DNA of 64,000 nt, taken from sequence record NC_070967.1. The stretch is one strand, 5' to 3'. The translations under genes were made by a program, and so were the position numbers. Of this stretch, positions 54 to 57,472 are shown piece by piece. Every line of letters starts with the position of its first letter. The first letter of the stretch is position 1. The notes below the pieces were generated by a model. The model was not told the DNA's origin, made no database searches, and was given only the letters and a program-made list of their open reading frames with translations.

Positions 54-95
54 GGCTCTAGGCGAATCATTGTGCCTAGAGCCTTCCTTTTTATT
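54..95 (+). terminator. Intrinsic terminator-like hairpin overlapping a copy of the bipartite motif
   Basis: GGCTCTAGGC (54-63) and GCCTAGAGCC (74-83) form a perfect 10-bp inverted repeat followed by TTCCTTTTTATT. Confidence 0.65.
62..88 (+). promoter_or_regulatory. Bipartite motif copy (GCGAA-N13-AGCCTTCCT), putative phage promoter
   Basis: Exact consensus 29 nt upstream of ATG 118; one of about 16 copies. Confidence 0.65.
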
Positions 96-117
96 AGAAT
101 AACATTGAAAGTTTAAA

Positions 118-636
118 ATGCAGTCTTTTGGATATACAATACTAGCTCTCGTAGTAATTCTTATTCTCTACAAGATCATCAGATCACTTATCGTTCATGA
201 GCAGAAAGCATCTGAATCAACCATTGACAATGGATACAATCTTCCGATCAAAGAAGCAGTTGATACGTCGATCAGTACGAGGACTACGACGTCTACTGCT
301 ATACGTCGTCAACCTGAGCATCGTAGACAGGAAGTCAAGTCTGAGAAACGTCAGTCATATGACAATGATACGGTTGCCACTTCATACGATGATAATTCGG
401 ATACTGTAACTGCTGCAGTTATCTCAACGATCCTCTCGATTGAATCCAACAATTCTAGCTCGTCTCATTCAGATCATTCAAGTAGCTCGTCGTCTTCTCA
501 CTCAGATACCTCGAGTAGTTGGTCGTCATCTCACTCGGATAGTTCATCTTCTCACTCATCGTCTTACGACTCAGGATCGTCCAGCTCATACGACTCTGGT
601 AGTAGCACGTCAGACTCTGGTGGTGGAGGATGGTAG
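118..636 (+). CDS. Membrane-anchored protein with Ser-rich low-complexity C-terminus
   Basis: N-terminal hydrophobic helix; SSSHSD/SSYDSG repeats ending in GGGGW. Confidence 0.75.
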   Translation: MQSFGYTILALVVILILYKIIRSLIVHEQKASESTIDNGYNLPIKEAVDTSISTRTTTSTAIRRQPEHRRQEVKSEKRQSYDNDTVATSYDDNSDTVTAAVISTILSIESNNSSSSHSDHSSSSSSSHSDTSSSWSSSHSDSSSSHSSSYDSGSSSSYDSGSSTSDSGGGGW

Positions 637-654
637 GCGAATTTATTTTAACGA

Positions 655-688
655 ATAGGTTCACTTGAGGTCGTTAAGGGATTCTTCT
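655..688 (+). promoter_or_regulatory. Second repeated intergenic motif (ATAGGTTCACTT-N9-AAGGGATTCTTCT), copy A
   Basis: Same 12+13 nt blocks and same spacing at 45829-45862. Confidence 0.5.
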
Positions 689-729
689 CTGAAGGGTCGG
701 GTGGTCCGTCCCTCCTAGGAGAATTTAAA

Positions 730-861
730 ATGAAACTCGCTGCTCTTGTTCTGCTTTCAGTTGGTCTCGGTTGGTACTTGATGGGTTCGACTCAGTCGGA
801 TGCAATCAATAAGTGCCTTCAGAAGTTCTCTGAATCGACGTGCATTAATCAATACCGTTAA
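730..861 (+). CDS. Small membrane or secreted protein (43 aa)
   Basis: AGGAG RBS, ATG 730, MKLAALVLLSVGLGWYL..., TAA 859-861; below the ORF-track cutoff. Confidence 0.6.
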   Translation: MKLAALVLLSVGLGWYLMGSTQSDAINKCLQKFSESTCINQYR

Positions 862-890
862 GTTCACTCCATCAAAAGAGGGGAATCAAG

Positions 891-1094
891 ATGGTAATGT
901 TCGGTGTATCGAAAGATCCCATCGTACGTAAAGGATTTGAGGTACTGGCTCATCAAGCTGGTACCTCAGCAGCAAGAGATAATGAGCAGAGGGTAGTACC
1001 TGATCCGTGGATAGGTTTTGAGGACCACTGGAAATCTGGATACGACTCCTTTGTTAAAGGAGTTATGAGTTACGACTTCCTTCGACGTACGTAA
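891..1094 (+). CDS. Hypothetical protein
   Basis: ORF fits the + strand gene packing. Confidence 0.55.
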   Translation: MVMFGVSKDPIVRKGFEVLAHQAGTSAARDNEQRVVPDPWIGFEDHWKSGYDSFVKGVMSYDFLRRT

Positions 1095-1105
1095 CTGGTG
1101 AATTG

Positions 1106-1147
1106 TCTGGGATACTTGCTTAGGTAGGTATCCCAGATTACTTGTTT
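1106..1147 (+). terminator. Intrinsic terminator-like hairpin
   Basis: TCTGGGATAC / GTATCCCAGA 10-bp stem followed by a T-rich run. Confidence 0.55.
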
Positions 1148-1225
1148 CTAGACTAACTCTGAGGATCGTAAGATCCGATGAGGGATGCATTATTATTACA
1201 CGGACCCCTCCCTTGGAGATTGTTA

Positions 1226-1507
1226 ATGACTAAGACATATGAGACTCGAGAGATTAGTCCAGGTCAATCTGTATCTGTTGACAAGGCTAAGTTTACATTC
1301 TACAAGGAATCAGGAAAGTATTACACAGAGGGTGAGGGTATTGCTCCATTGTACTCTCATTATGACAACTCTCGTGAAGCTCTCATGAAGTTGAATGGAG
1401 GTAAGATGCCAGGACTCAGTGGTCCAGGAAATGATTTCTATCTTGTAATCTATCCTCTCAATGACGAGAGCGATATTGTCCCACGTTTACTGAAACCAGG
1501 AGAGTAG
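1226..1507 (+). CDS. Hypothetical protein
   Basis: GGAG RBS before ATG 1226, which is preferred over 1178. Confidence 0.65.
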   Translation: MTKTYETREISPGQSVSVDKAKFTFYKESGKYYTEGEGIAPLYSHYDNSREALMKLNGGKMPGLSGPGNDFYLVIYPLNDESDIVPRLLKPGE

Positions 1508-1508
1508 T

Positions 1509-1805
1509 ATGAGTGACGTGCGTCTTCAGGAATTGGATGAGATAGTTGAAGTTTCTCGTCAATCGAACACTCTGGATATCACATATCCAGTTTCACATAT
1601 TCTGAGATACTATCATGAAGACTCAGATAAATATGATGTGGATCAGATGCTCGAGATCTTCAACAAATGGCTTGATAGTTATCTGCGCACTCATATAAAT
1701 TCTGAAATGCACATACTCTCGATTGATGCTATTCTTGTGAAATTCTTTGAAGATCACAAGGTAGAATTTCCATCGTACCTCATTTCTAACAAGGACCTTG
1801 ACTAG
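1509..1805 (+). CDS. Hypothetical protein
   Basis: Tightly packed ORF, GGAG upstream. Confidence 0.65.
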   Translation: MSDVRLQELDEIVEVSRQSNTLDITYPVSHILRYYHEDSDKYDVDQMLEIFNKWLDSYLRTHINSEMHILSIDAILVKFFEDHKVEFPSYLISNKDLD

Positions 1806-1806
1806 C

Positions 1807-2259
1807 ATGAGAGACTATAATCTTAGATATGATCAGGATGCACTGGTATCGGTAAAATTGAAGAAGGGTAACGATCGTAGAGATCGTAATTCTAGATCTC
1901 TTAAAGAACTGACTGGTAAGATTAAACTAGTCATTCCATCTGGTGCAGATGAGTACACTTATCTGAGATATAAAGGTTTAGTAAAGAGGCCTCGGAGGAA
2001 TACTAAGTCATTAAAATCTGCACCTAAGACATCGATACGATACGCTATTGTTACTAGAAATGGTAATACAATATGTAATCACACTCGACTGAGATCAACT
2101 AAAGAAGAAACTGAGCGACGAAAACGGATTCGTGAGTTAGCTAATCGAGCTCGTGAGATGTTTGATGACATGGACTGTGATGTGTTCGCAGATAATGTCT
2201 GGAAGCTACTCAATGGAGACGAATCAGGTAAGATGTACTTTGGAGTGAATGAACAATGA
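1807..2259 (+). CDS. Hypothetical basic protein
   Basis: Tightly packed ORF; ATGA overlap with the next gene. Confidence 0.6.
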   Translation: MRDYNLRYDQDALVSVKLKKGNDRRDRNSRSLKELTGKIKLVIPSGADEYTYLRYKGLVKRPRRNTKSLKSAPKTSIRYAIVTRNGNTICNHTRLRSTKEETERRKRIRELANRAREMFDDMDCDVFADNVWKLLNGDESGKMYFGVNEQ

Positions 2260-2693
2260 ACTGGTCAGATCTTACAATTGCATTTCAGTACATCGTTAGT
2301 AATGTACCAGAACCTATGGGCAAGTCTAGTGATGGGATTCTGAAAGTCGAGTTTGGTAATGAGAGTCTGTGGGATAAAGAATTCCACATCAAACCTCTAG
2401 TCTCAGTTGAACTCGGAGGTTATCAAATAGGTACCTGGAATAGACATACAGTTATCGGACCATTCGATACTGAAGAAGATGCTATGGAAGGTACACGTAA
2501 GAAGATTCTTGAAGCATTCGATATTGTTAATCAAGAAATTTTCGAACATCTTCGACCTGAGTACTATCATCTTGAGGATGATCAGATCCCTCGATGGAAC
2601 AATGAAGTTAGTAGATTCTCGGACTCAGAGAAGTCTAAGATGATGAGTCTTGAGAACGAATTTCTCTCTGTATTAAGCGATCGGAAGGCTTGA
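2256..2693 (+). CDS. Hypothetical protein
   Basis: ATGA overlap, 145 aa. Confidence 0.7.
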   Translation: MNWSDLTIAFQYIVSNVPEPMGKSSDGILKVEFGNESLWDKEFHIKPLVSVELGGYQIGTWNRHTVIGPFDTEEDAMEGTRKKILEAFDIVNQEIFEHLRPEYYHLEDDQIPRWNNEVSRFSDSEKSKMMSLENEFLSVLSDRKA

Positions 2694-2703
2694 TAGCCTT
2701 CCT
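2677..2703 (+). promoter_or_regulatory. Bipartite motif copy (GCGAT-N13-AGCCTTCCT)
   Basis: One mismatch in the upstream box; 29 nt before ATG 2733. Confidence 0.6.
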
Positions 2704-2732
2704 TTCTTGATAAGAATAATATAGAGATTATT

Positions 2733-3005
2733 ATGAATAATACTATATCTACCCAATTGATTTGGGAAGAAGTAGATGAGGACCAGTGGTTTCTTTACTA
2801 TAATCCTACTGATAATTCTTCTAAGATTTTCATCGGAGAAGTGTACTGGTCTATTTCAGGATCTATCAGATGGATTAATAAATTGACAGACTGGAGAGAT
2901 TCATCATCTTCAATCGAACAAGCACGAGATGACTTGTTCACTAGTTGTCTGGAAGAACTTAGTAGACTCGATAAGTCATATCAAAGGATAGAGTATGCCA
3001 ACTGA
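2733..3005 (+). CDS. Hypothetical protein
   Basis: ORF following a motif copy. Confidence 0.65.
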   Translation: MNNTISTQLIWEEVDEDQWFLYYNPTDNSSKIFIGEVYWSISGSIRWINKLTDWRDSSSSIEQARDDLFTSCLEELSRLDKSYQRIEYAN

Positions 3006-3423
3006 AATCGTAGATGGTAAAATTGATGGGATCGATATAAACGATCCTCATTTTACTCTAAAACATATGTATCGAATCATTCCAGAGAGTGAAGCTGGAC
3101 AAGGACATGTTGATCGTATGCTTGACTTCTTCGTTGAGCATCCATATATTCCTGAGCAAGATACATATACTAAATATGAATTTGCTAATATTCTGACTAA
3201 ACATGATCATCGACTAGAGATGACAGGATTTTACTTCAATCCTGATGAAGAATTTAGTAACCTGGAAGTCGAGGATGACGAAAAGGCTATTCTACAACCT
3301 TATGCACTGATGCTTGCATGCCTACAAGGTAATGCATTCCCTGACCTTATCGAACAATACATGAAGGAAGCTAAATGGTTTCTCATGTCTAACGGTTGGT
3401 GGGATAAAGTACGTCAGGCATAA
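2995..3423 (+). CDS. Hypothetical protein
   Basis: Overlapping packed ORF, 142 aa. Confidence 0.7.
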   Translation: MPTEIVDGKIDGIDINDPHFTLKHMYRIIPESEAGQGHVDRMLDFFVEHPYIPEQDTYTKYEFANILTKHDHRLEMTGFYFNPDEEFSNLEVEDDEKAILQPYALMLACLQGNAFPDLIEQYMKEAKWFLMSNGWWDKVRQA

Positions 3424-3438
3424 TCTGAAAGGATATGC

Positions 3439-3684
3439 ATGAGTATAGAATACTTTATCAAACTAGGGATCAATCTTACATTATCATTATCCTGTATAGG
3501 TATGCTGATAATTATGAGGCAGATTCTCCATAAGGAGAGTTTTACTCAGAAAAGATTGATCATGTTGTTCACGAGTATACTGATTGTAGTCATTCTGGCC
3601 ATGATCTGGACTGACTACTCATTTGTCGTCTACCGTTACTTGCATCCAGCTGAGAAATCAGACTTGATCCTTAACGGTAATTAA
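3439..3684 (+). CDS. Small two-helix membrane protein
   Basis: Two hydrophobic segments; AAGGA RBS. Confidence 0.65.
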   Translation: MSIEYFIKLGINLTLSLSCIGMLIIMRQILHKESFTQKRLIMLFTSILIVVILAMIWTDYSFVVYRYLHPAEKSDLILNGN

Positions 3685-3698
3685 TCACTCTAGAATCG

Positions 3699-3725
3699 GC
3701 GAACCTAACGTCGGATAGCCTTCCT
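3699..3725 (+). promoter_or_regulatory. Bipartite motif copy (GCGAA-N13-AGCCTTCCT)
   Basis: Exact consensus, intergenic. Confidence 0.65.
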
Positions 3726-3732
3726 TAATGTC

Positions 3733-3803
3733 AGACGTTCGATCGTCTTTCAGGTTGCCTTAGCCAGTATCTTAGTCTTCGGATTGAGATACTGGCTCTT
3801 TTT
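3733..3803 (+). ncRNA. Candidate sRNA of about 70 nt between the motif and a strong terminator
   Basis: No credible ORF; AGACG/CGTCT 5' hairpin, unpaired linker, then a terminator. Confidence 0.35.
3762..3803 (+). terminator. Strong intrinsic terminator with a cUUCGg loop
   Basis: AGCCAGTATCTTAGTC-TTCG-GATTGAGATACTGGCT, 16 bp with 2 G-U pairs, then CTTTTT. Confidence 0.8.
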
Positions 3804-3831
3804 CTGTTTCTACTGAAATTTGTGGTGTGAC

Positions 3832-4017
3832 ATGAGTATTAAAGATCGTGAGATGAAATCTCTGTGCAATCAACTCAAAACTCTGTTTTGTGGTGGTAAA
3901 GTAGATGATCTCACTCGATTAATAATTTCAAATGAACTAGCGATCTTCAATCGGAAGTATAAGAGTAATCTCACAATGGACATTTCCAATGATGGAATAT
4001 TGTTCGAGGAACGTTAA
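3832..4017 (+). CDS. Hypothetical protein
   Basis: TAATG overlap with the helicase gene. Confidence 0.5.
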   Translation: MSIKDREMKSLCNQLKTLFCGGKVDDLTRLIISNELAIFNRKYKSNLTMDISNDGILFEER

Positions 4018-6281
4018 TGTCAATTGTAGTCGTCAATGGTCAAGAATTTGAGACAGATAGTCTTGATTTTAGTGACAAGTCTAAAAGATTAAATTGGCAT
4101 ACGGATGAAGGTAAATTTATTCGTTCATTGAAGCAAGATATCTATCTAACTGCTAAGATGGTTGAATATTGTACCGATCATGTAGATAATTTGGCCACTG
4201 ATTACAAGTCACCGGACGGTCTCGGGTTCAAGTATGTCAAAGCCTCATTTATGGCTGAGCTACGTGATAAATCTAATAAAACACCTGAGAATTTCGTTAA
4301 TAACCTATTTATCCCGTATTATACTGTAATGATCAATGCGATCAAGGCACTATCTCAAGTTGTTGATACGGACGAGAAAGAGGATACATGGGTATGGACG
4401 TACAATGAGCAAGGTAAGATCATTTATGATTATTCACCTGAAGCTCTTCAACGTCGTAAAACATTCCTAGAGAATTTTGACAAGTCGATCCTACCTCTAG
4501 ACTACAAGAAGTTAGAGGAGATTTTTACTAAGCCTGAATACACGACAGAGACTAACAAACGAGTAGTCTGTTGGTCGTGTGGTTCTTATAAGACGACACT
4601 GATTCGTCAGTTTATCGTAAAGAACTGGCTTAAAGGCATATTGTATGCTTGTACAACGATCGAAGAAGTCGACATGTTGTCATACGATATCGCGTGCTTC
4701 ATAGGTGAGCAGAATGTATTCAAGCTCCACTCTCAGATCGATGAGAGTATCTATGATCAGTACCATAAGGACCCAGAGTTCCTATTCTCCAAGCCTGTCG
4801 TCGTGACGACGCATTACAGACTTATGATGGACCCTCCGACTATCTTCATCTCTCAGATTAATAAACCTGGAGGTCAAGATCCTCGTCGACAGTACGTCCT
4901 CATCGATGAGAAACCACAATTCTTTGATTCGATCAGTATTTCAAGTGATCAGATTAAGAATGTGATGAGTCTTGTTACTAGCATCGATGATCCTGATGCT
5001 CCAGATGAAGCATTTAGATCATTCAGAAATTCAGTGATGAATTCTACAGGACTTCAGAAGTCATTAAATCACAATTCTGTTGAGATCTTCAGTAAATCGA
5101 TTGTTAATAAGTCTACTCAGATGGTAACAACTTATACGACTCCGTCTGGTTCGATTAAAGAAGTACCTAATATTCATATGTTGAGAGCAGAATTCTCAAT
5201 TTATATGATTGTTAAGCAGATTCAGAAGAAATTGAAGCAGGATCCTCAGTATTATCCTAAGACTAAGGATAATGTGTTCTATTATAATCTTGGTGATCTT
5301 GGATTCAAGAATCTGATTATCTTTGATGGCACAGGTGATCTTATTCTAGGTTCTGAGGACCCTGACTGGAAGAATCCAGATTGGATGATTGTTAAGACTC
5401 CAGAGACTAGCTTTAGATTCAAGGGATCATTCAATGAGATCGAATGTGATATTCGCAGACGTCTCGTTGGTAATCAACTTGAGCATTACTCTCGTGAGTT
5501 TGATAAGATTATTCAGTATTTGATTGATCTCGCAGATAAGCATGAGAAGATCTTTGTAGTGTCATGGAAGGATCTTAAGAATGGAGAAGAAGATATATCT
5601 CCGAGTCCTATCCTGGAACATAATGTACTAGCTAAGCTAACAGATCAAAGGATTGTTCAAGCGACTGATGATCTAAATTCTTACATTAAGTATCGTATTC
5701 CTGTATCCATTCGTCACAAGTTCGACTTCACATATTACATGTCAGGTAGAACGAGAGGTACGAATCAATTCATGAATTGTGATGCTGCTGTTCTATTAGG
5801 TAGTTTTCATATTCCTAATAGTGTGATTGCTCGTATGAATGAGCAAAACAATGCTAAGATGACCAACAAGATGCACTCTATGGCAGAAGTCGTTCAAGCT
5901 ATCTATCGTACTAGAGCTCGAAAGATGAAGCCTGTCGATGTTTACTATACTTCTGATTGGAGTAAAGAATTTATCGTAGATGTGATGAAATATATCAATG
6001 CTACAGTTTCTGATGAGTTTAATGTTGACCTACAGACTTCAATGAGGTTATTCTCAATGACGTATGGAGTAAATATTACTCCGACGACAACTAAGTTGAT
6101 AAAACTGTTATCTTCTAGATATACAGATTTGACTTCAGGTAAAAGTGTTGAATTTAGAATACCTGATGGTGAAGATAGTAGAGAATACAAATCTGCTATC
6201 AAGAACTTATTGAATAAGGTGGATGAATTACGATTTGAAGATAAGAAGTATTCTCGATTCTTCAGCGTAGTACCCGTCTAA
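4017..6281 (+). CDS. SF2-like helicase/ATPase with a degenerate Walker A
   Basis: CGSYKTT (motif I-like), LIDEKP (motif II), GRTRGTN (motif V-like), VQAIYRTRAR (motif VI-like). Confidence 0.55.
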   Translation: MSIVVVNGQEFETDSLDFSDKSKRLNWHTDEGKFIRSLKQDIYLTAKMVEYCTDHVDNLATDYKSPDGLGFKYVKASFMAELRDKSNKTPENFVNNLFIPYYTVMINAIKALSQVVDTDEKEDTWVWTYNEQGKIIYDYSPEALQRRKTFLENFDKSILPLDYKKLEEIFTKPEYTTETNKRVVCWSCGSYKTTLIRQFIVKNWLKGILYACTTIEEVDMLSYDIACFIGEQNVFKLHSQIDESIYDQYHKDPEFLFSKPVVVTTHYRLMMDPPTIFISQINKPGGQDPRRQYVLIDEKPQFFDSISISSDQIKNVMSLVTSIDDPDAPDEAFRSFRNSVMNSTGLQKSLNHNSVEIFSKSIVNKSTQMVTTYTTPSGSIKEVPNIHMLRAEFSIYMIVKQIQKKLKQDPQYYPKTKDNVFYYNLGDLGFKNLIIFDGTGDLILGSEDPDWKNPDWMIVKTPETSFRFKGSFNEIECDIRRRLVGNQLEHYSREFDKIIQYLIDLADKHEKIFVVSWKDLKNGEEDISPSPILEHNVLAKLTDQRIVQATDDLNSYIKYRIPVSIRHKFDFTYYMSGRTRGTNQFMNCDAAVLLGSFHIPNSVIARMNEQNNAKMTNKMHSMAEVVQAIYRTRARKMKPVDVYYTSDWSKEFIVDVMKYINATVSDEFNVDLQTSMRLFSMTYGVNITPTTTKLIKLLSSRYTDLTSGKSVEFRIPDGEDSREYKSAIKNLLNKVDELRFEDKKYSRFFSVVPV

Positions 6282-6291
6282 GACCCTTCCC
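6265..6291 (+). promoter_or_regulatory. Variant bipartite motif (GCGTA-N13-ACCCTTCCC)
   Basis: Same 13-nt spacing, degenerate boxes. Confidence 0.4.
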
Positions 6292-6366
6292 GCTTAAGGA
6301 GGCTGAATATCCCGGTTTGTACTGGACCGGGGAATTGACCTTTCTTAAGTAACTTATAATAAGATA

Positions 6367-6915
6367 ATGATTTATATTCATAATAAGTCTTGTAGAGAAG
6401 ACATTTTGACGACCATTTTAGGGATGTCTTTACAATACTGTAAAGAGTCATCTAAGAAATTTTTAGATAGAATGGAATCTAGTGAAGAGATTATCAATAT
6501 TCATCTTCACAAGAGGTATCCAGATGGAGACTGTAAAATCTGTCCTGATATCGTTATTGAAACAGAGAGTACGGTTTATATTGGTGAAAGTAAATTAAAA
6601 TATGAACCTGATGCTCTGAATCAAGTCGAAGATTACGTGAGAAGACTTTCTTCCTTAGAAGAATTTTATTACAAGAATAAAATACCTCTTTTGATTATTC
6701 CAGATCGAAAGAATCTCAATGAGTGGATTTATCACTGTGAGGACAATTACTGTTTTGACATGGATAAACAAACTGATCGTAAGGGTAAACTACTTAAACG
6801 AATCGGTAACGACTATAACAGTCTATCGGACAAAATAACTATGGGATTCATTGATATTGAGCATATCGTCAATGGGTCACCGTATGATGCAATTCTAAGG
6901 GAAATGATGAAATGA
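6367..6915 (+). CDS. PD-(D/E)XK nuclease-like protein
   Basis: CPDIVIE...IGESK matches PD...ExK. Confidence 0.55.
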   Translation: MIYIHNKSCREDILTTILGMSLQYCKESSKKFLDRMESSEEIINIHLHKRYPDGDCKICPDIVIETESTVYIGESKLKYEPDALNQVEDYVRRLSSLEEFYYKNKIPLLIIPDRKNLNEWIYHCEDNYCFDMDKQTDRKGKLLKRIGNDYNSLSDKITMGFIDIEHIVNGSPYDAILREMMK

Positions 6916-7199
6916 AACTCACGAGGACTGAAGTTTATCAAATCAACGGTAAAGAGACAGCTCATATCGTAGCTAGTAAGTTTGCTATAGATGGATCACT
7001 CTTCAACAAGTTCTATCTTGAAGTCAATGACAAAGTGAGTGCTCCTAGATTGATTAGAGATTATATTGATACTCTACAATTGACAATCCCTGATAAGGTT
7101 GTCTATATTCTTAGCTTAGAGAAAACTGAAATTAGAACTACAGATTTCCGAAAGAAGAATAATGAGCAAGGTAGGAGACCTACTCCAAAATCTGAATGA
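6912..7199 (+). CDS. Hypothetical protein
   Basis: ATGA overlap. Confidence 0.55.
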   Translation: MKLTRTEVYQINGKETAHIVASKFAIDGSLFNKFYLEVNDKVSAPRLIRDYIDTLQLTIPDKVVYILSLEKTEIRTTDFRKKNNEQGRRPTPKSE

Positions 7200-7374: not shown

Positions 7375-7488
7375 TCATGTTAATGGAACGTTCCATGGAT
7401 GGAGGATCCACGATATACTATGGGAGACCAGAGATCGGACAACTGAGAGATCCTCAGAGTCCATTCATTTTAGATAAAAGTGTGAGTT

Positions 7489-9562: not shown

Positions 9563-9804
9563 CAATAAATAGTAATGTATTGCATGCAATTAATGATTTC
9601 AAGAACTATATCATTGAACTTGATAATGGTGTACCGTATCGTCGAGCAGTTCAGATAAGAGATCAAGCTAGTATCTGCAATGATCTGATGAACTATACGA
9701 GTGCCAGTATGTGGGATTCTAATCCTCCTGAGTGGCAGGAATTAGATTCACTAGTGACAATGGTATTTCAAAAGACAAATAAATTGATCTACAAGAGCGA
9801 ATGA
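9559..9804 (+). CDS. Hypothetical protein
   Basis: ATGA overlap. Confidence 0.55.
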   Translation: MTINSNVLHAINDFKNYIIELDNGVPYRRAVQIRDQASICNDLMNYTSASMWDSNPPEWQELDSLVTMVFQKTNKLIYKSE

Positions 9805-9823
9805 GAGGTCGATTAACCTTCCT
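9797..9823 (+). promoter_or_regulatory. Bipartite motif copy (GCGAA-N13-AACCTTCCT)
   Basis: 33 nt upstream of the oxidoreductase ATG. Confidence 0.6.
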
Positions 9824-12045: not shown

Positions 12046-12340
12046 TGAAGTCTACTCTCGAGTGAGATGTACAAAGTACATTATTCGATATGTTACAGAA
12101 GGATATCCTTCGAGTATTCATCTTGACTATACTGTAGTTCCAGTCGAAGGTGATCTCGTTCATGCTGAGGTTCATACGTCTCACTCTTTTGATATTAAAG
12201 AATTCGTAGTAGGTGCGAGTACATATAATATGTCTCAAATTTTCGATACTCATGAAGGAGCTGAGACTGCAGCTAAGAAGAGAATTCGTAACGACTACGA
12301 AAAGACGAAATCTCTATTAGAACGCTTCAATCTGGCATAA
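12038..12340 (+). CDS. Hypothetical protein
   Basis: Packed ORF. Confidence 0.6.
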   Translation: MYDEVYSRVRCTKYIIRYVTEGYPSSIHLDYTVVPVEGDLVHAEVHTSHSFDIKEFVVGASTYNMSQIFDTHEGAETAAKKRIRNDYEKTKSLLERFNLA

Positions 12341-12378
12341 GCCTTTCTAATTGTCCAGCACCAAATAGGTAATTTATA

Positions 12379-15093: not shown

Positions 15094-15132
15094 GCCGTAC
15101 AGGAGTAAGGATAGCCTTCTCTCTTGTACGGC
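15094..15132 (+). promoter_or_regulatory. Hairpin containing a variant motif (CCGTA-N13-AGCCTTCTC)
   Basis: GCCGTACAGGAG / CTCTTGTACGGC stem enclosing the downstream box. Confidence 0.45.
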
Positions 15133-20123: not shown

Positions 20124-20180
20124 ACGAATTTGAGGTCCTAAAGCCTTCCTTGTCAGGTCGGTTTTAGGACCTTTTATTTT
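20124..20180 (+). terminator. Terminator hairpin with a bipartite motif copy (ACGAA-N13-AGCCTTCCT) in its stem and loop
   Basis: AGGTCCTAAA / TTTAGGACCT stem, then TTTATTTT. Confidence 0.65.
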
Positions 20181-24247: not shown

Positions 24248-24265
24248 CCTCTAGAGAGGTTAATA

Positions 24266-24274
24266 AGCCTTCCT
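24266..24274 (+). promoter_or_regulatory. AGCCTTCCT box without the upstream box, preceded by a palindrome
   Basis: TTAACCTCT-AG-AGAGGTTAA palindrome immediately upstream; lies ahead of the DnaB-like gene. Confidence 0.4.
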
Positions 24275-27408: not shown

Positions 27409-27435
27409 GCGAAGTTAGGTGCGATAAACCTTCCT
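27409..27435 (+). promoter_or_regulatory. Bipartite motif copy (GCGAA-N13-AACCTTCCT)
   Basis: Upstream of the SSB gene. Confidence 0.6.
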
Positions 27436-32909: not shown

Positions 32910-33542
32910 ATGGATATTGCATTATTTGGTCTAATTGACTATACACTCTTCAGCTGGGTACTTTTCGCAGTGCTCATCGGATTTGTAGGTATCATTGAAG
33001 AGAATGAACTACCTATTCCAGCATTCATTGTATTTATTGTAGGTCTTACCGCACTTCAGTACTATACAGATCTGAAAGCTTGGACATACGTCTACGAGAA
33101 TCCTTGGTACTTCCTCTTGTATGTAGTTATCTACATCATAGCTGGTATCGTATGGTCTCATGTTAAATGGGTACTTTATCTTCAAGAGATCAAGCGTTAT
33201 CATCCTACGAGCATCAAAGAAGCAGAGGCTCACGCACTCGTAGTTGAAAAACGTAATGAAGAGTATCGTAGTACTCATCCTGAGTACAAATGTCAGTCTG
33301 TTGATGTTAATAAAGAAGCGATCGAATATACTACTAAGAGATTCCGATTGAAGTCTCTTCCTCCGAAGGCTTCTGAAAAGAAGGTAGCTATCACATCATG
33401 GTTGATGTACTGGCCTATCTCTGCACTATGGACAGTTGTTGATAATTTCGTACTTAATCTATTCAACAATTTGTTCGAACTGATTCGTGCTAGCTATCAG
33501 CAGGTATCGGATCGTATATTCGCTGATTTTACGACCAAGTGA
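32910..33542 (+). CDS. Multi-pass membrane protein
   Basis: Several hydrophobic segments; GGAG RBS. Confidence 0.75.
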   Translation: MDIALFGLIDYTLFSWVLFAVLIGFVGIIEENELPIPAFIVFIVGLTALQYYTDLKAWTYVYENPWYFLLYVVIYIIAGIVWSHVKWVLYLQEIKRYHPTSIKEAEAHALVVEKRNEEYRSTHPEYKCQSVDVNKEAIEYTTKRFRLKSLPPKASEKKVAITSWLMYWPISALWTVVDNFVLNLFNNLFELIRASYQQVSDRIFADFTTK

Positions 33543-33560
33543 GGCTCGATTAGCCTTCCT
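33534..33560 (+). promoter_or_regulatory. Bipartite motif copy (ACCAA-N13-AGCCTTCCT)
   Basis: 29 nt upstream of the FEN gene. Confidence 0.55.
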
Positions 33561-35564: not shown

Positions 35565-36019
35565 TGAAGAAGAATGTATTAGTAGGATTAGATCATAGGA
35601 TCCTTACAGGTCTAGATAGTCTTGTCCTACTCTTATGCACCAGACTACAAATCAAGAAAATCCATCTTCAGAGACTCCTGGTTTGTATTTATTGTGTCTT
35701 ATTGCATAAAATTGGATTTTCTGTTATAGGCATCCTTGTTCTACAAGGTTTACAAGAATTGTCCCTGTTAAATATGGGGACGAAATCATACAACAATTAC
35801 ATCGAGGGAACTCGATTTGAGCCATTCAATATTTATGTCAGGCTCATCTCCTTCCTATTCTGTATATATTATACTGCATATTCATTCGCTCTTCATGAGA
35901 TCACTACAATTAATGTACTTCAGAAGATTATTCTGGAAGTGTACGTGTATAGTGTATTCTGTCGAGACTACAACGGTACGACGCAAGTAGAGTACTGGGA
36001 CGAGACGAAGTTCGCCTGA
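35564..36019 (+). CDS. Hydrophobic hypothetical protein
   Basis: TAATG-coupled ORF filling the gap. Confidence 0.45.
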   Translation: MKKNVLVGLDHRILTGLDSLVLLLCTRLQIKKIHLQRLLVCIYCVLLHKIGFSVIGILVLQGLQELSLLNMGTKSYNNYIEGTRFEPFNIYVRLISFLFCIYYTAYSFALHEITTINVLQKIILEVYVYSVFCRDYNGTTQVEYWDETKFA

Positions 36020-36031
36020 ATAAGCCTTCTC
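36005..36031 (+). promoter_or_regulatory. Bipartite motif variant (ACGAA-N13-AGCCTTCTC)
   Basis: Same spacing. Confidence 0.5.
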
Positions 36032-41546: not shown

Positions 41547-41573
41547 GCGAAGGAGCGTCCCTTAAGCCTTCCT
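41547..41573 (+). promoter_or_regulatory. Bipartite motif copy (GCGAA-N13-AGCCTTCCT)
   Basis: Exact consensus right after a terminator, ahead of the vWA gene. Confidence 0.65.
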
Positions 41574-45581: not shown

Positions 45582-45832
45582 TTCCATCAAAATGGACGGT
45601 TTATATCGTAGAGTGTAGAGATAAATCCTTGTATACAGGAATCACTACTGATATAAACCGTCGTCTACTCCAGCACAATAATGGTACTGGAGCCAAGTAT
45701 ACAAGAAGCAGAAGACCTGTTAATCTCGTTTATACCGAGAAGTTACCAGACAGGTCTTCTGCTCTCAAACGTGAATATGCTATTAAGCAATTGTCTCGTA
45801 AGGAGAAGTTGCAATTAGTAAATTTTGGATAG
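45572..45832 (+). CDS. GIY-YIG nuclease (YhbQ/UPF0213-like)
   Basis: VYIVEC.D.SLYTGIT.D..RR..QHN.G.GAKYTR..RP, ALKREY.IK. Confidence 0.9.
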   Translation: MEIVPSKWTVYIVECRDKSLYTGITTDINRRLLQHNNGTGAKYTRSRRPVNLVYTEKLPDRSSALKREYAIKQLSRKEKLQLVNFG

Positions 45833-45882
45833 GTTCACTTAACGTCTCCAAGGGATTCTTCTTTAGGAAGGGACCTTGGAGA
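45829..45882 (+). promoter_or_regulatory. Second repeated motif, copy B, within the hairpin TCTCCAAGG/CCTTGGAGA
   Basis: ATAGGTTCACTT-N9-AAGGGATTCTTCT is shared with 655-688. Confidence 0.5.
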
Positions 45883-51025: not shown

Positions 51026-51925
51026 ATGAACGATTTTAATGTAATCCTTACAGGTTCTGCTGGTTACATTGGAAGCATCGTTGGCGATCGTCTACTGAAA
51101 TCCAATTCGATTGATTTGGAGACAGTAGACGTCGTCTCTGACGTTCTTCCAGTAGATACTATCTTAACTGAAGTTGGTAATCTATCCAACAAGTCATCTG
51201 ATGTCCTTGTTCATCTTGCTGCAAAGATCTCAGTAGTCGAATCTCATAAGCAAGCTCGTCAGTACTACGAGAACAATTGTAGTCAATTCCATGAGATGTT
51301 GAATGATCGTGGTAACTATTTCAAGCATGTTATCTATGCATCCTCTTTCTCGATTTATGATTCTGATTTGAGTATCTATCCTCAGTCTGTCTATGCATCC
51401 ACCAAATACGAAGGTGAATGGATTCTCAAGAGATGGGCTCAGATGACGAATCGAGATTATTCAATCCTACGATTTGCCAATCCAATTGGCGTTAGTCAAT
51501 CACTTCACTCTCATATTGCAGACCGTATTCAATCGAGCTATGCTAATGTTATGTGGAGACTTGCTCGATGCAAATTACTAGGTGAGATGTTCTACATTCA
51601 TGATCTACCTGGTATGACACGTGATTTTTATCCCGTTGAATGGATTGGATACGCTATCGATTGGATCGCGAAGAATGGTCCCGTAGGTACTGTAAATCTA
51701 GGTAGTGGTAAGCCTGTATCGGTTATGGATCTTCTTCAGCATATCTGTGAGAAGTATAATATCAGTTACAAATATGTTCTACCACCTGAAGGTACTGCTC
51801 TAGGTATTACCAAGAAGGTTGATGTATTCAAAGAAGGTATTCCTGATTTTGATACATACGATCCAGTTGTATATTGTGAGAAGTCGTTTTTAGATTATCT
51901 ATCGTTGATTCAGAACGCGAACTAA
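51026..51925 (+). CDS. NAD-dependent epimerase/dehydratase (GalE-like extended SDR)
   Basis: TGSAGYIGS, HLAA, YASTK, LRFANPIG. Confidence 0.88.
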   Translation: MNDFNVILTGSAGYIGSIVGDRLLKSNSIDLETVDVVSDVLPVDTILTEVGNLSNKSSDVLVHLAAKISVVESHKQARQYYENNCSQFHEMLNDRGNYFKHVIYASSFSIYDSDLSIYPQSVYASTKYEGEWILKRWAQMTNRDYSILRFANPIGVSQSLHSHIADRIQSSYANVMWRLARCKLLGEMFYIHDLPGMTRDFYPVEWIGYAIDWIAKNGPVGTVNLGSGKPVSVMDLLQHICEKYNISYKYVLPPEGTALGITKKVDVFKEGIPDFDTYDPVVYCEKSFLDYLSLIQNAN

Positions 51926-51943
51926 CGCTAGATTAGCCTTCCT
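51917..51943 (+). promoter_or_regulatory. Bipartite motif copy (GCGAA-N13-AGCCTTCCT)
   Basis: Exact consensus heading the glycosyltransferase unit. Confidence 0.65.
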
Positions 51944-54790: not shown

Positions 54791-54798
54791 GAGGTAAT

Positions 54799-55764
54799 AT
54801 GAAAACTGTATTAGGTCTTGATCCTGGGTACGGAGACTTCAAGGTATGCTTCGGTAATTCTAAAGGGATTATCTCTAAGCTATACAAGTTCAACTCCGTA
54901 CTAGGTCGTGTTGATGTCAGTCAACATATCAACGATACTCGAGTTTATGGATATAAAGGTACGACCTACTATGTAGGTGAGATGGCCTTGAAACTTGAGT
55001 CATCTCGAATCATCGACTTGATGTCTTACAACAATCTGGAGACATTCTCTCCTCTCCTGATTGAACATGTCATCAATGAACTAGGAGAAGTTCCAGATAT
55101 CGTCGTATGTGGTCTTTCGATCGCTCACGTTGACTATTCAGGATACTATCGAGATGCGATTCTTAACTATCTTGTTAAGGAGAAGAATCTTCCAATCAAG
55201 GATGTCCGCATCATCCCACAAGGTGTAGGTGGTAAGTTAACGTATGACAAGTATGGTCGTACATTCCCTGCCCTCACATCAGAATTCAGTGATGACAACA
55301 ACTATGTAGGTTGTGATATTGGATTCAATACACTCGATGTATTCCATGTCATTCAGAACAAGGTATCTCCTAACTTGATTAGAGGTATTGAGAGTCAAGG
55401 TGTAGTCAAGATCGTAACTCGACTTCTTGAGTATATCAAGAATGACTACAGTCTGGAGTTCTCTGTTAAGGAAGGTAAGAACATCCTTGATAATGGTCAA
55501 TTTAAGATCCGTGGACGTGAATTTGATGTCACCAAACAGATTGAAGTGATCAAACGTTCTTATCTTGAAGAAGTCAAGGAACTCATCGAGAATGAATTCG
55601 GAGCAGTACTTGACAAGGTCGAGAAGATCAAGATGTTTGGAGGAGGTTCATATCTCTTCAATACGATGAATGACTCCTTCATCGAAACTCCAGAATCTCG
55701 TGCTGAATACTATAATTCCATCGGGAATTATCTACATGGCTTGACAATTGTCGAGAAAGATTAA
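54799..55764 (+). CDS. ParM/StbA-like actin-fold ATPase
   Basis: GLDPGYGDFK (phosphate 1), IPQGVG (connect 1), CDIGFNTLD (phosphate 2), FGGGS (adenosine), N..G (connect 2). Confidence 0.88.
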   Translation: MKTVLGLDPGYGDFKVCFGNSKGIISKLYKFNSVLGRVDVSQHINDTRVYGYKGTTYYVGEMALKLESSRIIDLMSYNNLETFSPLLIEHVINELGEVPDIVVCGLSIAHVDYSGYYRDAILNYLVKEKNLPIKDVRIIPQGVGGKLTYDKYGRTFPALTSEFSDDNNYVGCDIGFNTLDVFHVIQNKVSPNLIRGIESQGVVKIVTRLLEYIKNDYSLEFSVKEGKNILDNGQFKIRGREFDVTKQIEVIKRSYLEEVKELIENEFGAVLDKVEKIKMFGGGSYLFNTMNDSFIETPESRAEYYNSIGNYLHGLTIVEKD

Positions 55765-55768
55765 TCTT

Positions 55769-55807
55769 AAGGTCTACTAGAAGAGATTCTAGTAGACCTT
55801 TTCTTTT
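55769..55807 (+). terminator. Intrinsic terminator
   Basis: AAGGTCTACTAGAA / TTCTAGTAGACCTT perfect 14-bp stem, then TTCTTTT. Confidence 0.85.
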
Positions 55808-55817
55808 TGAGGATAAA

Positions 55818-56177
55818 ATGCTCAAATTAGATAGAAGTGTCAAAGAGTCTGAGTGTCTACACTACGAATTTGATATTAATGGTGGTTATAGCATTACACT
55901 AAAAATCGTCTTTGATGATACTGAAGAGAATGCGATTCACTTTGATTCTCATGATCACGATGTTCAGATTAATGGATTTAAATATTATATTTTAGACTCA
56001 GATACATACAGTAATGGGACATCAATGAGGATTATGAAGATATCGTCTACAAATGATGATAGTGCTAAATACCTGATGTCTTATATTGAAGGTTTTATAA
56101 TCAAAAATAAATTAGGAAACTCTAGCGGACTTCGATATAGATCTTATATACGATCAGATCAACATTCACTCAAGTGA
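55818..56177 (+). CDS. Hypothetical protein
   Basis: GAGG RBS. Confidence 0.6.
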   Translation: MLKLDRSVKESECLHYEFDINGGYSITLKIVFDDTEENAIHFDSHDHDVQINGFKYYILDSDTYSNGTSMRIMKISSTNDDSAKYLMSYIEGFIIKNKLGNSSGLRYRSYIRSDQHSLK

Positions 56178-56186
56178 GGACAGAAG

Positions 56187-56915
56187 ATGGCTCGTTGCTA
56201 TGTAGGATGTAGTGGATTCTCGTATAATCATTGGAATGATAACTTCTACCCTGCAGGAGTAGAGCGGTTTTCATTTTATACGAGTCAATTTGATTCATTA
56301 GAGATCAATAGTTCATTCTACAGATTACCTAGTGCAAGCGTATTCTACTCATGGTATCGACGATCACCTGCTCATATGACATTCACTGTGAAAGCTCCTC
56401 AGACGATTACTCATCGTAAGAAGCTAAAGGATGCTGACGATATAGTTCAGAGATTCTATGAGAATACTCTTGAGCTAGGTGACAAGATGAAATGTGTCTT
56501 ATGGCAGTTACCTCCTAATTTCTCCATAAGAATGTATGATCGTGTCAAGAAATTCTGTGACAGTATTCATAACAGATTTCCTAATTCAGCATTCGAGTTC
56601 AGACATCCTTCATGGATGCAGACTCACGTACCTCAACTTCTATCTGCATACGACTTTGAGTTTGTACGTACAGATTTTCATAAATACGTAAATGTATCCA
56701 TGGATGGATCCTCGTCTAAATTCCAGTACTATCGATTACATGGACCTACAGGTCAGTATCACGGTCGCTACACTGATGAGTTTCTTGAGAATATAGCTGA
56801 TCGTCTAACGGATGGATCATTCGTATTCTTCGATAATGATAGTGGAGGTCAAGCTCCTAGGGATGCTAAAAGATTAATCAAAATTCTAGAGACAAGAAAT
56901 GAAATTAAATTATAG
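56187..56915 (+). CDS. DUF72 (YecE-like) TIM-barrel protein
   Basis: GCSGFSY..W...FYP, EINSSFYRLP, FTVKAP..ITH, LWQLPP, EFRHPSW, RLHG, FFDND. Confidence 0.92.
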   Translation: MARCYVGCSGFSYNHWNDNFYPAGVERFSFYTSQFDSLEINSSFYRLPSASVFYSWYRRSPAHMTFTVKAPQTITHRKKLKDADDIVQRFYENTLELGDKMKCVLWQLPPNFSIRMYDRVKKFCDSIHNRFPNSAFEFRHPSWMQTHVPQLLSAYDFEFVRTDFHKYVNVSMDGSSSKFQYYRLHGPTGQYHGRYTDEFLENIADRLTDGSFVFFDNDSGGQAPRDAKRLIKILETRNEIKL

Positions 56916-57444
56916 AGCATATGCAGGAATTGGATCAAGAAGTACTCCTCCACATATTCTTGAATTTATGAGAATTCTAGCATTCAAGCTTGGATCTCAA
57001 GAAGATCCGTGGACTGGTCGATCAGGTCACGCTGATGGTGCAGATGATGCATTCGAAGTAGGTATGGAACAAGCTAATGGACCTATGGAGATCTTTCTAC
57101 CGTGGAGAGGTATGGCTAACAGTCGATGTAAGAGTGATTCTCCATACTATGAAATCAAAACAATTGCTTACGATCTAGCTTCTAGGATTCACCCTAAGTG
57201 GTACGGATTAACTCATGGAGCTAAGAAACTTCATGCTAGGAATACTTATCAAGTCCTAGGTTACGATCATCAGACTTGGAGTAAAGCTGTTGTATGCTAT
57301 ACATCTGACGGTCTACCAATTGGAGGTACTCGTACAGCGATTAAGATCGCAGAGATGCACGGTATTCCGGTTATCAATCTAGGTGATCCTGAGTGTAAAT
57401 ACGAAACTCCTGATCAAGTTGTGGAATATTTAAACTCTCTATAG
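56899..57444 (+). CDS. SLOG-superfamily (DprA/Smf-like) protein
   Basis: YAGIGSR, SGHADGAD, LHARN, GGTRTAI. Confidence 0.8.
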   Translation: MKLNYRAYAGIGSRSTPPHILEFMRILAFKLGSQEDPWTGRSGHADGADDAFEVGMEQANGPMEIFLPWRGMANSRCKSDSPYYEIKTIAYDLASRIHPKWYGLTHGAKKLHARNTYQVLGYDHQTWSKAVVCYTSDGLPIGGTRTAIKIAEMHGIPVINLGDPECKYETPDQVVEYLNSL

Positions 57445-57445
57445 A

Positions 57446-57472
57446 GCGAATCTAGCGTGGGAAAGCCTTCCT
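57446..57472 (+). promoter_or_regulatory. Bipartite motif copy (GCGAA-N13-AGCCTTCCT)
   Basis: Exact consensus 30 nt before the pyruvyl transferase ATG. Confidence 0.65.

Follow-up and report, generated by a model that had tools for sequence, protein, structure and literature searches.

A two-box signal that probably marks a phage-specific promoter class in Rhizobium phage RHph_Y65

Rhizobium phage RHph_Y65 carries a 27-base signal, GCGAA followed after 13 bases by AGCCTTCCT, which precedes about 12 gene groups and several tRNA genes. The DNA analysed (the window) comprises 64,000 nucleotides, record positions 62001-126000 of the 206.8 kb genome. Judged from its sequence, the motif RCGAA-N13-ARCCTTCCT, here termed class B, is probably the core of a phage-specific promoter class. 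Most likely it would belong to a pair of related, phage-only promoter types that a polymerase with a phage beta-prime subunit reads. The core idea of the initial annotation, a phage-specific promoter class distinct from sigma-70, is supported: over-representation, orientation, intergenic placing, the copies at tRNA genes and in a divergent region, and conservation all point the same way.

In class B, the upstream box (GCGAA, 5 bp) and the downstream box (9 bp) are exactly 13 bp apart. The constant spacer length had been reported before; the spacer sequence, described there as variable, is not free, since a t-t-A-G-G-n-g-T-C is partly conserved. A loosely conserved stretch, y-n-T-T-G-T-c-A-G-A, lies 3' of the downstream box. 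Nine exact matches are present in the window, all on the + strand (starting at 62, 3699, 9797, 20124, 27409, 41547, 46983, 51917 and 57446), and none in 100 dinucleotide-preserving shuffles. When up to three mismatches were allowed, 17 matches were found in the window (3.25 expected), and the near matches previously noted at 2677, 6265, 33534 and 36005 were recovered. CCTTCCT alone occurs there 13 times on the + and twice on the - strand against 5.8 expected, both strands summed; the lone downstream box described earlier is present at 24266-24274. Among the 8-mers of the + strand transcribed region, AGCCTTCC is the most over-represented (23 copies against 0.63 expected). With a weight matrix 29 sites of at least 10 bits were detected in the genome, 28 of these on the + strand, compared with at most one in Markov-shuffled genomes. 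The window contains 11 strong sites (29-45 bits; Table 1). The weak sites at 12322, 15095 and 24248, none of them individually significant, have their next start codons at 30, 28 and 61 nt; the modal distance is 28-30 nt. On these scores, the roughly 16 transcription units initially claimed for the window become 11 firm and two moderate ones, and the other three (2.6-6.4 bits) are doubtful.

Table 1. Class B sites, class A sites and a putative small RNA (window coordinates)
Feature	Position	Strand	Score (bits)	Context
Class B	62..88	+	33.5	box end 29 nt 5' of gp169
Class A (TAGGTTCACTT...GGGATTCTTCTCTGAAGG)	656..695	+		upstream of gp170
Class B, GCGAT variant	2677..2703	+	29.1	gp176 29 nt downstream
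Class B	3699..3725	+	37.4	gp179 start 291 nt downstream
Putative small RNA, 3' of site 3699	3731..3806	+		about 75 nt; two hairpins
Class B, degenerate (GCGTA / ACCCTTCCC)	6265..6291	+	17.0	gp180 75 nt downstream
Class B (AACCTTCCT)	9797..9823	+	38.8	polysaccharide deacetylase gene gp191 33 nt downstream
Doubtful class B-like	12322..12348	+	4.6	ThyX 30 nt downstream
Doubtful class B-like	15095..15121	+	2.6	phosphoheptose isomerase gene 28 nt downstream
Class B (ACGAA)	20124..20150	+	38.3	gp212 41 nt downstream
Lone downstream box AAGCCTTCCT (24265-24274), no GCGAA box	24248..24274	+	6.4	DnaB-like helicase gene 61 nt downstream
Class B (AACCTTCCT)	27409..27435	+	37.9	gp225 54 nt downstream
Class B, ACCAA variant	33534..33560	+	33.1	exonuclease gene gp233 29 nt downstream
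Class B, degenerate (ACGAA / AGCCTTCTC)	36005..36031	+	11.9	gp237 65 nt downstream
Class B	41547..41573	+	35.0	vWA protein gene gp245 100 nt downstream
Class A	45830..45869	+		upstream of gp251
Class B, top score	46983..47009	+	44.9	gp254 19 nt downstream
Class B	51917..51943	+	33.8	gp260 27 nt downstream
Class B	57446..57472	+	40.3	polysaccharide pyruvyl transferase gene gp269 30 nt downstream

Class B is always oriented along the transcription of the downstream genes. Comparison of the two strands of the genome gave 17 exact matches, 16 on the + and one on the - strand. This sole - strand copy (record 159895-159921) has a - strand gene on either side and precedes the prohead core gene. High-scoring sites are either intergenic or located at the 3' end of a gene. 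When coding and non-coding DNA were compared, the box of 20 of the 28 + strand matches was in non-ORF DNA, which makes up 6% of the genome (binomial P 1.5e-18). By our reading of the gene tables, four matches are deep within genes, each with about 20 bits or less. The distance from box to ATG clusters at 27-33 nt; one copy ends 10 nt before tRNA-Ser, another 18 nt before tRNA-Asn.

Since genes are separated by short intergenic regions, the motif is in most cases equally near the upstream stop codon and the downstream start, and most copies begin within about 20 nt of the stop. Conceivably, the motif is chiefly a terminator or RNA 3'-end signal, with AGCCTTCC as the 3' hairpin arm and TTCTT as its U-rich tail. 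Site 62 overlaps an 11-bp terminator-like hairpin at 54-83, and at 2677 an 8-bp hairpin is made up of spacer and box, with a T-rich run behind it. At 20124 the upstream gene has a terminator hairpin whose loop contains the box. Five of 20 copies (record 62062, 64677, 128636, 133225 and 159921) are far more stably folded than shuffled sequences (z -3 to -6), yet the other 15 have no significant hairpin and the mean z is -1.0. The location of the 5' arm varies, upstream of GCGAA at 62 and within the spacer at 2677, so that a terminator has no use for a GCGAA conserved at a fixed distance. At record 206556 a copy is in a divergent control region where no co-oriented (+) gene is upstream to be terminated, and the copy at 62 is 202 nt past the preceding stop codon, with the next start 29 nt away. 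Furthermore, copies in the relative L122 lie within gene 3' ends, about 22-36 nt before the next ATG. Termination as the main function is thus decidedly unlikely. The initial description mentioned only the proximity of copies to terminators; in addition, five to six copies form terminator-like hairpins with the box as 3' arm. In some copies, the box and the T/C run behind it have probably been recruited to serve as stem arm and tail of a terminator, which would create compact terminator-promoter junctions. The putative small RNA 3' of site 3699 folds with a dG of -31.6 (z -6.2); its second hairpin, a 16-bp stem with a U run, is predicted to be a strong terminator. It is 98.4% identical to phage TM30, the flanks 82-96%.

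Between RHph_Y65 and TM30, a member of the same genus, 0 of 140 box positions and 1 of 130 spacer positions are changed, compared with 16 of 587 flanking positions. Class B sites are kept where the neighbouring genes differ; site 46983 is present in TM30 although the upstream gene is absent there. Site 6265 is missing in TM30, where the segment is replaced. In L112, with a beta-prime of 55% identity, an exact GCGAA-N13-AGCCTTCCT is located upstream of a YfbR-like gene, the orthologue of the RHph_Y65 site at 148290. L122, with a topoisomerase of 40% identity, has four + strand copies of ACTYAAW-N11-GAAAGCCTTCCC at the distance from start codons given above, one of them at the YfbR-like gene. 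L116 and L114/L118 retain A-R-C-C-T-T-C 5' of genes. In uncultured relatives (40-55% protein identity) the AGCCTTCC box is found 5' of orthologous genes and the upstream box differs. A constant downstream and a changing upstream box is the pattern expected of a promoter of the -10/-35 type.

These comparisons bear on two further explanations. The motif may act at the RNA level, as a signal for processing, stability or translation of polycistronic transcripts; it is strand-specific, located between genes and adjoins tRNAs, which need processing. However, there is no consensus secondary structure, no Rfam family matched in the window, and RNA elements are not usually constrained by a strict 13-nt spacer that lacks base-pairing covariation. 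The exchange of the upstream box with retention of the downstream box resembles -35/-10 evolution. We consider an RNA signal very improbable. Even less credible is a junction repeat for recombination or homing, which would mark exchangeable modules and take no part in transcription. An indel boundary between RHph_Y65 and TM30 (alignment resumes at 46966) is 17 nt from copy 46983, and a TM30-specific gene has its own box-bearing copy. Yet the majority of copies are away from mosaic boundaries, and two properties suggest gene expression: the distance to start codons or tRNA genes is fixed, and distant relatives show conservation at orthologous positions. Moreover, promoter repeats of T4-like phages secondarily serve as recombination sites.

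The preferred reading, a promoter core, is connected with a second motif. Class A, TAGGTKCASTTA...GGGATTCTTCTTTGAAGG, is present in about 18 copies in the same register as class B. In an offset-3 alignment, nine of 13 downstream positions of the consensus sequences are identical and TTAGG is common in the spacer. Thus, both classes have a common register and a T/C-rich core and differ in specificity positions. Class A heads the early region, ligase, primase, helicase and the operon of the phage beta-prime. This subunit, gp335, is of full bacterial type (E 1e-152 to solved beta-prime structures); zinc-finger cysteines, NADFDGD, bridge helix and trigger loop are retained, and clamp helices, lid and rudder have diverged. 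The same operon encodes gp337, a conserved helical protein of about 215 amino acids; genes of this family are always directly 5' of the beta-prime gene, remote members included. A predicted model of the gp337 family had no fold match to sigma factors or any solved structure. An RpoB (beta) homologue was searched for in RHph_Y65 and not found. No sigma factor or other known specificity factor emerged when about 60 hypothetical proteins were scanned against Pfam and PHROGs, and RpoD, RpoE and T7 RNAP as phmmer/tblastn queries likewise gave negative results.

The lack of a cognate sigma factor in these searches would also fit a site bound by a phage regulator, be it an activator, a repressor or an antitermination loader, beside a separate weak core promoter. 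Bipartite sites with fixed spacing are typical of two-domain DNA-binding proteins as well, and T4 middle promoters do consist of an activator box, the MotA box at -30, and a host sigma-70 -10 element, with AsiA participating. But the motif is asymmetric and strictly co-oriented with genes. In the approximately 30 nt to the start codon no second conserved element exists except the ribosome-binding site, the tRNA-Ser copy leaves 10 nt only, and sigma-70-like matches are at chance (63 vs 64.4 expected, window 1-20000). A regulator site therefore appears rather unlikely. The class B promoter would resemble T4 middle promoters in that its upstream box is about 12-13 bp from the downstream element in place of a -35 and that the class serves middle/DNA-metabolism genes and tRNAs. 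In contrast, T4 has a normal TAnnnT -10 for host sigma-70, the RHph_Y65 box CCTTCCT is not A/T-rich, and MotA or AsiA homologues are absent among the annotations of the record.

Among the closest known systems is Bacillus phage SPO1 with its phage-sigma-dependent promoters (middle class gp28, late gp33/34). Common features are two non-canonical boxes at a fixed, sigma-like distance, high information content and several classes per genome that define temporal sets; in SPO1 phage proteins redirect the host core polymerase, as may be the case in RHph_Y65. Box sequences are unrelated, a sigma-like gene is not detectable in RHph_Y65, and RHph_Y65, unlike SPO1, supplies a catalytic core subunit. With the promoters of T7-family single-subunit polymerases (classes II and III) class B shares length, high conservation, strict orientation and phage-only use, and again two related classes differ at few specificity positions. 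However, a T7 promoter is one continuous block of about 23 bp, not two boxes with a semi-variable spacer, and requires a T7-like polymerase gene, which our search did not find. Beta-prime-type proteins are also encoded by jumbo/T-modified phages such as phiKZ, AR9/PBS1 and YerA41. In these phages both beta-like and beta-prime-like parts are encoded, frequently split and highly divergent, whereas the one beta-prime of RHph_Y65 is close to the bacterial type and a beta was not found. The published promoters of these phages, short and AT-rich, are not known to resemble class B. RHph_TM30 has been grouped with YerA41, RP13 and Carin-5 by a YerA41-type DNA polymerase and predicted hypermodified thymidine (PMC12686479).

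Presumably, transcription starts about 7-10 nt 3' of the class B downstream box. Leaders would then be about 20 nt for most genes and nearly absent for tRNA-Ser, and the boxes would be at about -33 to -29 and -15 to -7. This layout would suit a multisubunit RNA polymerase that carries a specificity factor with two domains. As the downstream box has no A/T-rich -10 character, melting and recognition would differ from known sigma-70-family promoters. Co-occurrence of beta-prime and class B in the same phage group suggests that they are linked, and the reading enzyme may be a phage-modified polymerase.

Class B heads units for DNA metabolism and modification, topoisomerase (topoisomerase II genes in the gp254 unit), PolA and tRNAs, all at record 62-148 kb, and one head gene in addition. 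The genes concerned and their place on the map suggest a 'middle' timing. Nucleotide and DNA-modification genes, topoisomerase and PolA do belong to the proposed middle/replication regulon; because ligase, primase, helicase and the beta-prime operon are headed by class A, 'replication regulon' is only partly right. In the most likely model, class A would be read first and its products would then switch the polymerase to class B, the switched enzyme comprising phage beta-prime, host beta, alpha and omega and a putative specificity factor.

The class B motif, RCGAA-N13-ARCCTTCCT (a GCGAA upstream box and a CCTTCCT-containing downstream box), was recovered where the initial annotation had placed it. 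The window contained nine exact matches, all on the + strand, compared to none in 100 shuffles. With up to three mismatches 17 matches were obtained (3.25 expected), among them the near matches reported earlier with the same 13-nt spacer. The whole genome has 17 exact copies, 16 on the + and one on the - strand. A weight matrix built from these 17 was used for the proposed scan of the full genome. It detected 29 sites of at least 10 bits, and in Markov-shuffled genomes at most one. Of these sites 28 are on the + strand; the sole - strand copy precedes a - strand gene. The 8-mer AGCCTTCC was the most over-represented one in the + strand transcribed region (23 observed vs 0.63 expected). The class B motif is real and highly non-random. 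About 16 transcription units had been assigned to it in the window. This held for 11 strong sites (29-45 bits) and two moderate ones (6265, 17.0 bits; 36005, 11.9 bits); 12322, 15095 and the lone box at 24266 were weak. The spacer had been described as fixed in length and variable in sequence. Indeed, none of the 17 exact copies deviated from 13 nt; the spacer sequence is non-random and carries a partly conserved TTAGG-n-GTC.

Next to strand, placement was as initially described, i.e. intergenic or at gene 3' ends. The box was in non-ORF DNA for 20 of the 28 + strand matches, with non-ORF DNA making up 6% of the genome (P = 1.5e-18). Four matches were located well inside genes according to gene tables read by eye, all of them low-scoring (about 20 bits). 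The single - strand copy (record 159895-159921) lies between two - strand genes, 5' of the prohead core gene. Therefore, orientation tracks transcription and not the replicon strand. Equal frequency in coding DNA or on the - strand, which would have spoken against promoters, was not observed (20/28 in non-ORF DNA, 1/29 on the - strand). Annotated start codons followed the last base of CCTTCCT at a modal distance of 27-33 nt (8 of 16 window cases, including the two weakest sites). Outside the window, tRNA-Ser and tRNA-Asn start 10 and 18 nt, respectively, after a class B copy. On its 3' side the box is followed by a loose y-n-T-T-G-T-c-A-G-A, and tRNA-Ser starts directly after ...TTGTCA. Box placement would fit a start site about 7-10 nt 3' of the box.

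How does class B relate to known promoter classes? Like promoters of the sigma-70 family, phage-sigma and ECF types included, it has two boxes at a fixed distance, co-oriented and shortly upstream of genes. The distance from GCGAA is 16 bp to CTTCCT or 15 bp to CCTTCC, which may be compatible with the sigma-70-family range of 16-18 bp, depending on the hexamer registers. The sigma-70 -10 element is TAnnnT with conserved A(-11) and T(-7), the ECF -10 element is CGT-type, and transcription starts 5-9 nt downstream of the -10 element. In contrast, the class B downstream box, A-R-C-C-T-T-C-C-T, has no A after the first two positions. The initial view that the boxes are unlike sigma70 was thus confirmed: a TAnnnT-type element is missing, and sigma-70-like matches in window 1-20000 were at chance level. 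A T7-family promoter is a continuous 20-23 bp block spanning the start, whereas class B consists of two information-rich boxes and a weaker spacer. Further, the phage differs from T7-family systems in lacking a T7-like RNAP (nothing below E 0.6 in tblastn and phmmer searches of the whole genome with T7 RNAP). T4 MotA/AsiA middle promoters have a similar upstream-box geometry, yet class B is devoid of the TAnnnT element. The RNAP core of phiKZ- and AR9-type jumbo phages comprises phage beta-like and beta-prime-like subunits; in Y65 only beta-prime, and no beta, was found. We know of no jumbo-phage promoter which the class B consensus resembles. A literature search returned no description of these motifs or of transcription in this genus; motif words retrieved primer lists only.

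By k-mer statistics a second promoter-like motif was detected, class A (TAGGTKCASTTAGGGTCCT-nn-AGGGATTCTTCTTTGAAGG), with about 18 + strand copies upstream of genes. Fourteen are located in the first 62 kb, the first one 57 nt before gene 1; class A heads the early region. The consensus sequences were aligned with class B position i against class A position i+3. Common to both were the spacer TTAGG and, in the downstream element, 9 of 13 positions (A-G-x-x-x-T-x-C-T-T-C-T-T). The differences are in the upstream box (GCGAA in B vs GTKCA in A) and in three or four downstream-box positions. The common register and positions indicated that A and B are variants of one promoter architecture. Such a pair would be expected of one kind of enzyme working with two specificities. 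The term replication regulon, initially applied to class B, was only partly right because class A heads the ligase-primase-helicase unit. As to a late class, inspection by eye of the gaps among the - strand structural genes (record 158777-206684) gave no convincing common motif; several TATAAT- and TATAAATA-like strings are present there. The structural genes have one class B copy only and no class A copy.

Y65 and the congeneric phage RHph_TM30 (L124) are 97.6% identical overall and only about 89% over window 1-4100. Between them 0 of 140 box positions, 1 of 130 spacer positions and 16 of 587 flank positions were changed. The copy at 46983 is retained in TM30 despite the absence of the upstream gene there, and a gene specific to TM30 (L124:12332-12844) has a box-bearing copy of its own. 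Whole-gene replacements between both phages were seen at window 4121-6911 and 12031-12438; window 46966-46983 was also compared with L124:47027-47044, where an indel boundary precedes a class B copy by 17 nt. Possibly, promoter repeats may act as module junctions.

Contigs of uncultured relatives were located via beta-prime and topoisomerase proteins. In L112, whose beta-prime is 55% identical, an exact GCGAA-N13-AGCCTTCCT precedes a YfbR-like deoxynucleotidase gene; the orthologous site in Y65 is at 148290. ACTYAAW-N11-GAAAGCCTTCCC is present four times on the + strand of L122 (topoisomerase 40% identical), about 22-36 nt from the following start codon, and the YfbR-like gene is again among the genes headed. 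L116 and the A+T-rich L114/L118 retain A-R-C-C-T-T-C before genes. The look into relatives, proposed at the outset, thus demonstrated that across the clade the downstream box is kept upstream of genes and the upstream box gives way to other sequences, as -10-like and -35-like elements do, respectively. In L355, the most remote contig with a lone beta-prime, no such box was found; a sigma-70-like promoter precedes the beta-prime module. An exact-pattern scan of IMG/VR yielded single, chance-level matches only, and a beta-prime search of IMG/VR no relative. A metagenome scan gave no multi-copy phage contig and the same coding-segment artefact as the genome scan discussed below. The best explanation for class B is that of a phage-specific core promoter class with one sister class. 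The initial proposal of such a class is supported at the sequence level by over-representation, orientation towards genes, and an upstream box swapped and a downstream box kept in relatives.

The record of RHph_Y65 (NC_070967.1 / MN988525.1; 206,821 bp; Kleczkowskaviridae, genus Cuauhnahuacvirus) contains the window at 100% identity. Plus-strand genes run from ~0 to 158.7 kb in the order small early genes, then nucleotide, DNA-modification and replication genes, a 20-tRNA region, and finally PolA and beta-prime. The - strand encodes the structural genes, from 206.7 back to 158.8 kb. An adenylosuccinate-synthetase-like gene, gp019 (record 10186-11436, outside the window), bears a PurZ-style label in the record. 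The phages YerA41, RP13, Carin-5, IME392 and EP_H11 are described as having, or predicted to have, hypermodified thymidine, and RHph_TM30 is counted among the phages with this prediction (PMC12686479). Together with the PurZ-style gene and enzyme genes of the window, this listing suggests base-modified DNA. If so, class B units would include modification genes.

Coordinates of class A copies and of features associated with both putative promoter classes in RHph_Y65 and relatives (window position = record position - 62000)
Feature	Coordinates	Strand	Remarks
Class A	window 656-695	+	second promoter-like class
Class A	window 45830-45869	+	second promoter-like class
Class A, first 62 kb	record 27, 6408, 10111, 13915, 17789, 20634, 26286, 29206, 31425, 34179, 44611, 46421, 46997, 59001	+	
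Class A	record 141881	+	heads ligase-primase-helicase unit
Class A	record 153447	+	heads gp337-gp336-beta-prime operon
Class B copies overlapped by hairpins	window 54-83, 2683-2702, 20133-20175; record 128652-128677, 159890-159915		AGCCTTCC box = 3' arm or loop, T/C run = tail
Predicted structured RNA, ~75 nt	window 3731-3806		starts just after class B copy 3699, ends in 16-bp terminator hairpin; dG -31.6, z -6.2
gp335, beta-prime	record 154425-157808 (L004:42425-45808)		outside window; 1127 aa
gp337 family	record 153520-154176; L112:6163-6819; L114:9312-9959; L116:9335-9988; L353:1363-2031; L355:6001-6753		directly upstream of lone beta-prime
ThyX, polysaccharide deacetylase, heptose isomerase, sugar epimerase, pyruvyl transferase	window 9857-10819, 12379-13179, 15150-15872, 51026-51925, 57503-58405		enzymes and coordinates are separate lists, orders not matched

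What could read the motif? The phage beta-prime, gp335, has Pfam Rpb1 domains 1-5 and matched solved beta-prime chains at E 1e-152. Compared to E. coli beta-prime the zinc-finger cysteines, NADFDGD, bridge helix and trigger loop are intact. The clamp helices, i.e. the sigma-docking surface, the lid and the rudder diverged, and SI3 is mostly missing. By these sequence features gp335 is a genuine, complete bacterial-type beta-prime. A search of the genome with E. coli RpoB identified no beta homologue, and the large hypothetical proteins had no Pfam matches. Similar lone beta-prime genes are present in the Vibrio phages Va2 and 1.031.O, the E. coli phages IME392 and EP_H11 and in metagenomic contigs; beta-prime-like genes are common to YerA41, RP13, Carin-5, IME392 and EP_H11. 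In IME392 (L110) inserted ORFs split the beta-prime gene and one piece is annotated 'beta'. Inteins interrupt PolA in L114 and L355 (L114:4045-8079; L355:387-5911).

The record annotation names no sigma factor. Thirty early or beta-prime-linked hypothetical proteins were negative for sigma in PHROGs, as were 29 further proteins in Pfam. The latter included genes between the capsid and sheath genes, the location of the virion sigma gene in YerA41. Homologues of RpoD and RpoE were absent (phmmer and tblastn; whole genome, six-frame ORFs). The class B reader may be a very divergent or a host-encoded sigma. A different candidate is the gp337 family of all-helical proteins (~215-250 aa; 59 representatives in 1.8 billion proteins). 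Its gene is directly 5' of beta-prime in every contig examined, including members with profile E-values of 1e-26 and 1e-9, and has a UDG-fused family A DNA polymerase as a neighbour. An AlphaFold model of gp337 (pLDDT 84) had no fold match in the PDB, and BFVD returned unnamed phage proteins only. A sigma-like nature of gp337 was dismissed as a profile search against the PDB, too, resulted in a weak MarR match only (E 0.004). Members of the gp337 family are candidates for a partner of the phage beta-prime or for its specificity factor. The lone bacterial-type beta-prime with its conserved partner protein is the most interesting lead.

In a tentative model, class A would be transcribed first and would drive the beta-prime operon. 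A polymerase with the phage beta-prime and a further specificity factor would then read class B. It is conceivable, at a rather low probability, that a hybrid RNAP reads class B and possibly class A. In it the near-bacterial phage beta-prime would replace host beta-prime in the host core, and a non-sigma specificity protein, with the gp337 family as candidate, would direct promoter choice. This arrangement would be common to the clade predicted to contain hypermodified thymidine. There, the downstream box (CCTTCCT), rich in T and poor in A, might be recognised in its modified form.

ALTERNATIVES

An intrinsic terminator requires a stable G+C-rich hairpin directly followed by a U run. Terminator-like hairpins overlapped the copies at window 62 and 2677, the two so called in window 1-20000. 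Overall, 15 of 20 copies did not fold far better than shuffles; the 5 that did have AGCCTTCC as 3' arm and a T/C run behind it in each case. Termination as the function of the class was rejected because so few copies fold significantly. In addition, the location of the 5' arm varies between copies and, therefore, the fixed GCGAA would have no role in a terminator. One copy, located between gp001 and the - strand structural genes in the divergent control region, has no + strand gene upstream that it could terminate. The initial annotation had noted copies at or near terminators; actually, hairpins overlap the box itself at several copies. These we read as compact terminator-promoter junctions with the two signals superimposed.

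The structured RNA predicted downstream of one copy is 98.4% identical to TM30 vs 82-96% for the flanking stretches and has no Rfam match. That the motif itself is an RNA element is unlikely; the copies do not share a common fold, the window has no Rfam match and the upstream box is swapped in relatives. Alternatively, the motif may be the site of a regulator beside a separate core promoter, yet the interval between motif and ribosome-binding site leaves no room for this and contains no second conserved element. A host promoter was also considered. A scan of 185,579 genomes with an extended pattern gave 106 matches, enriched in Alphaproteobacteria and Nitrospira. About two thirds traced back to a single conserved coding segment read from the opposite strand; the resemblance is coincidental and does not reflect a host regulon, and the host reading was discarded. 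The segment, GCGAATCGCGGGTSAGGAAGCCTTCCTTCTT (L247-L352), is protein-coding in many Alphaproteobacteria and Nitrospira, the opposite strand reading ...KKEGFLTRDS.... This accounts for the misleading enrichment of motif matches in host-related genomes.

Phage-specific promoter classes as such are a known kind of feature. Unusual are a consensus which resembles none of the compared classes (sigma-70-type, ECF-type, T4 middle, T7-like), a sister class in the same register and the conservation across a clade of mostly uncultured phages. The genome which hosts the motifs has a lone bacterial-type beta-prime and no recognisable sigma factor. The two motifs provide a ready map of transcription units for Cuauhnahuacvirus genomes and precise targets for start-site mapping. 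If a host/phage hybrid core does read these promoters, this would be a new viral route to capture bacterial transcription and would offer a handle on the transcription of hypermodified DNA.
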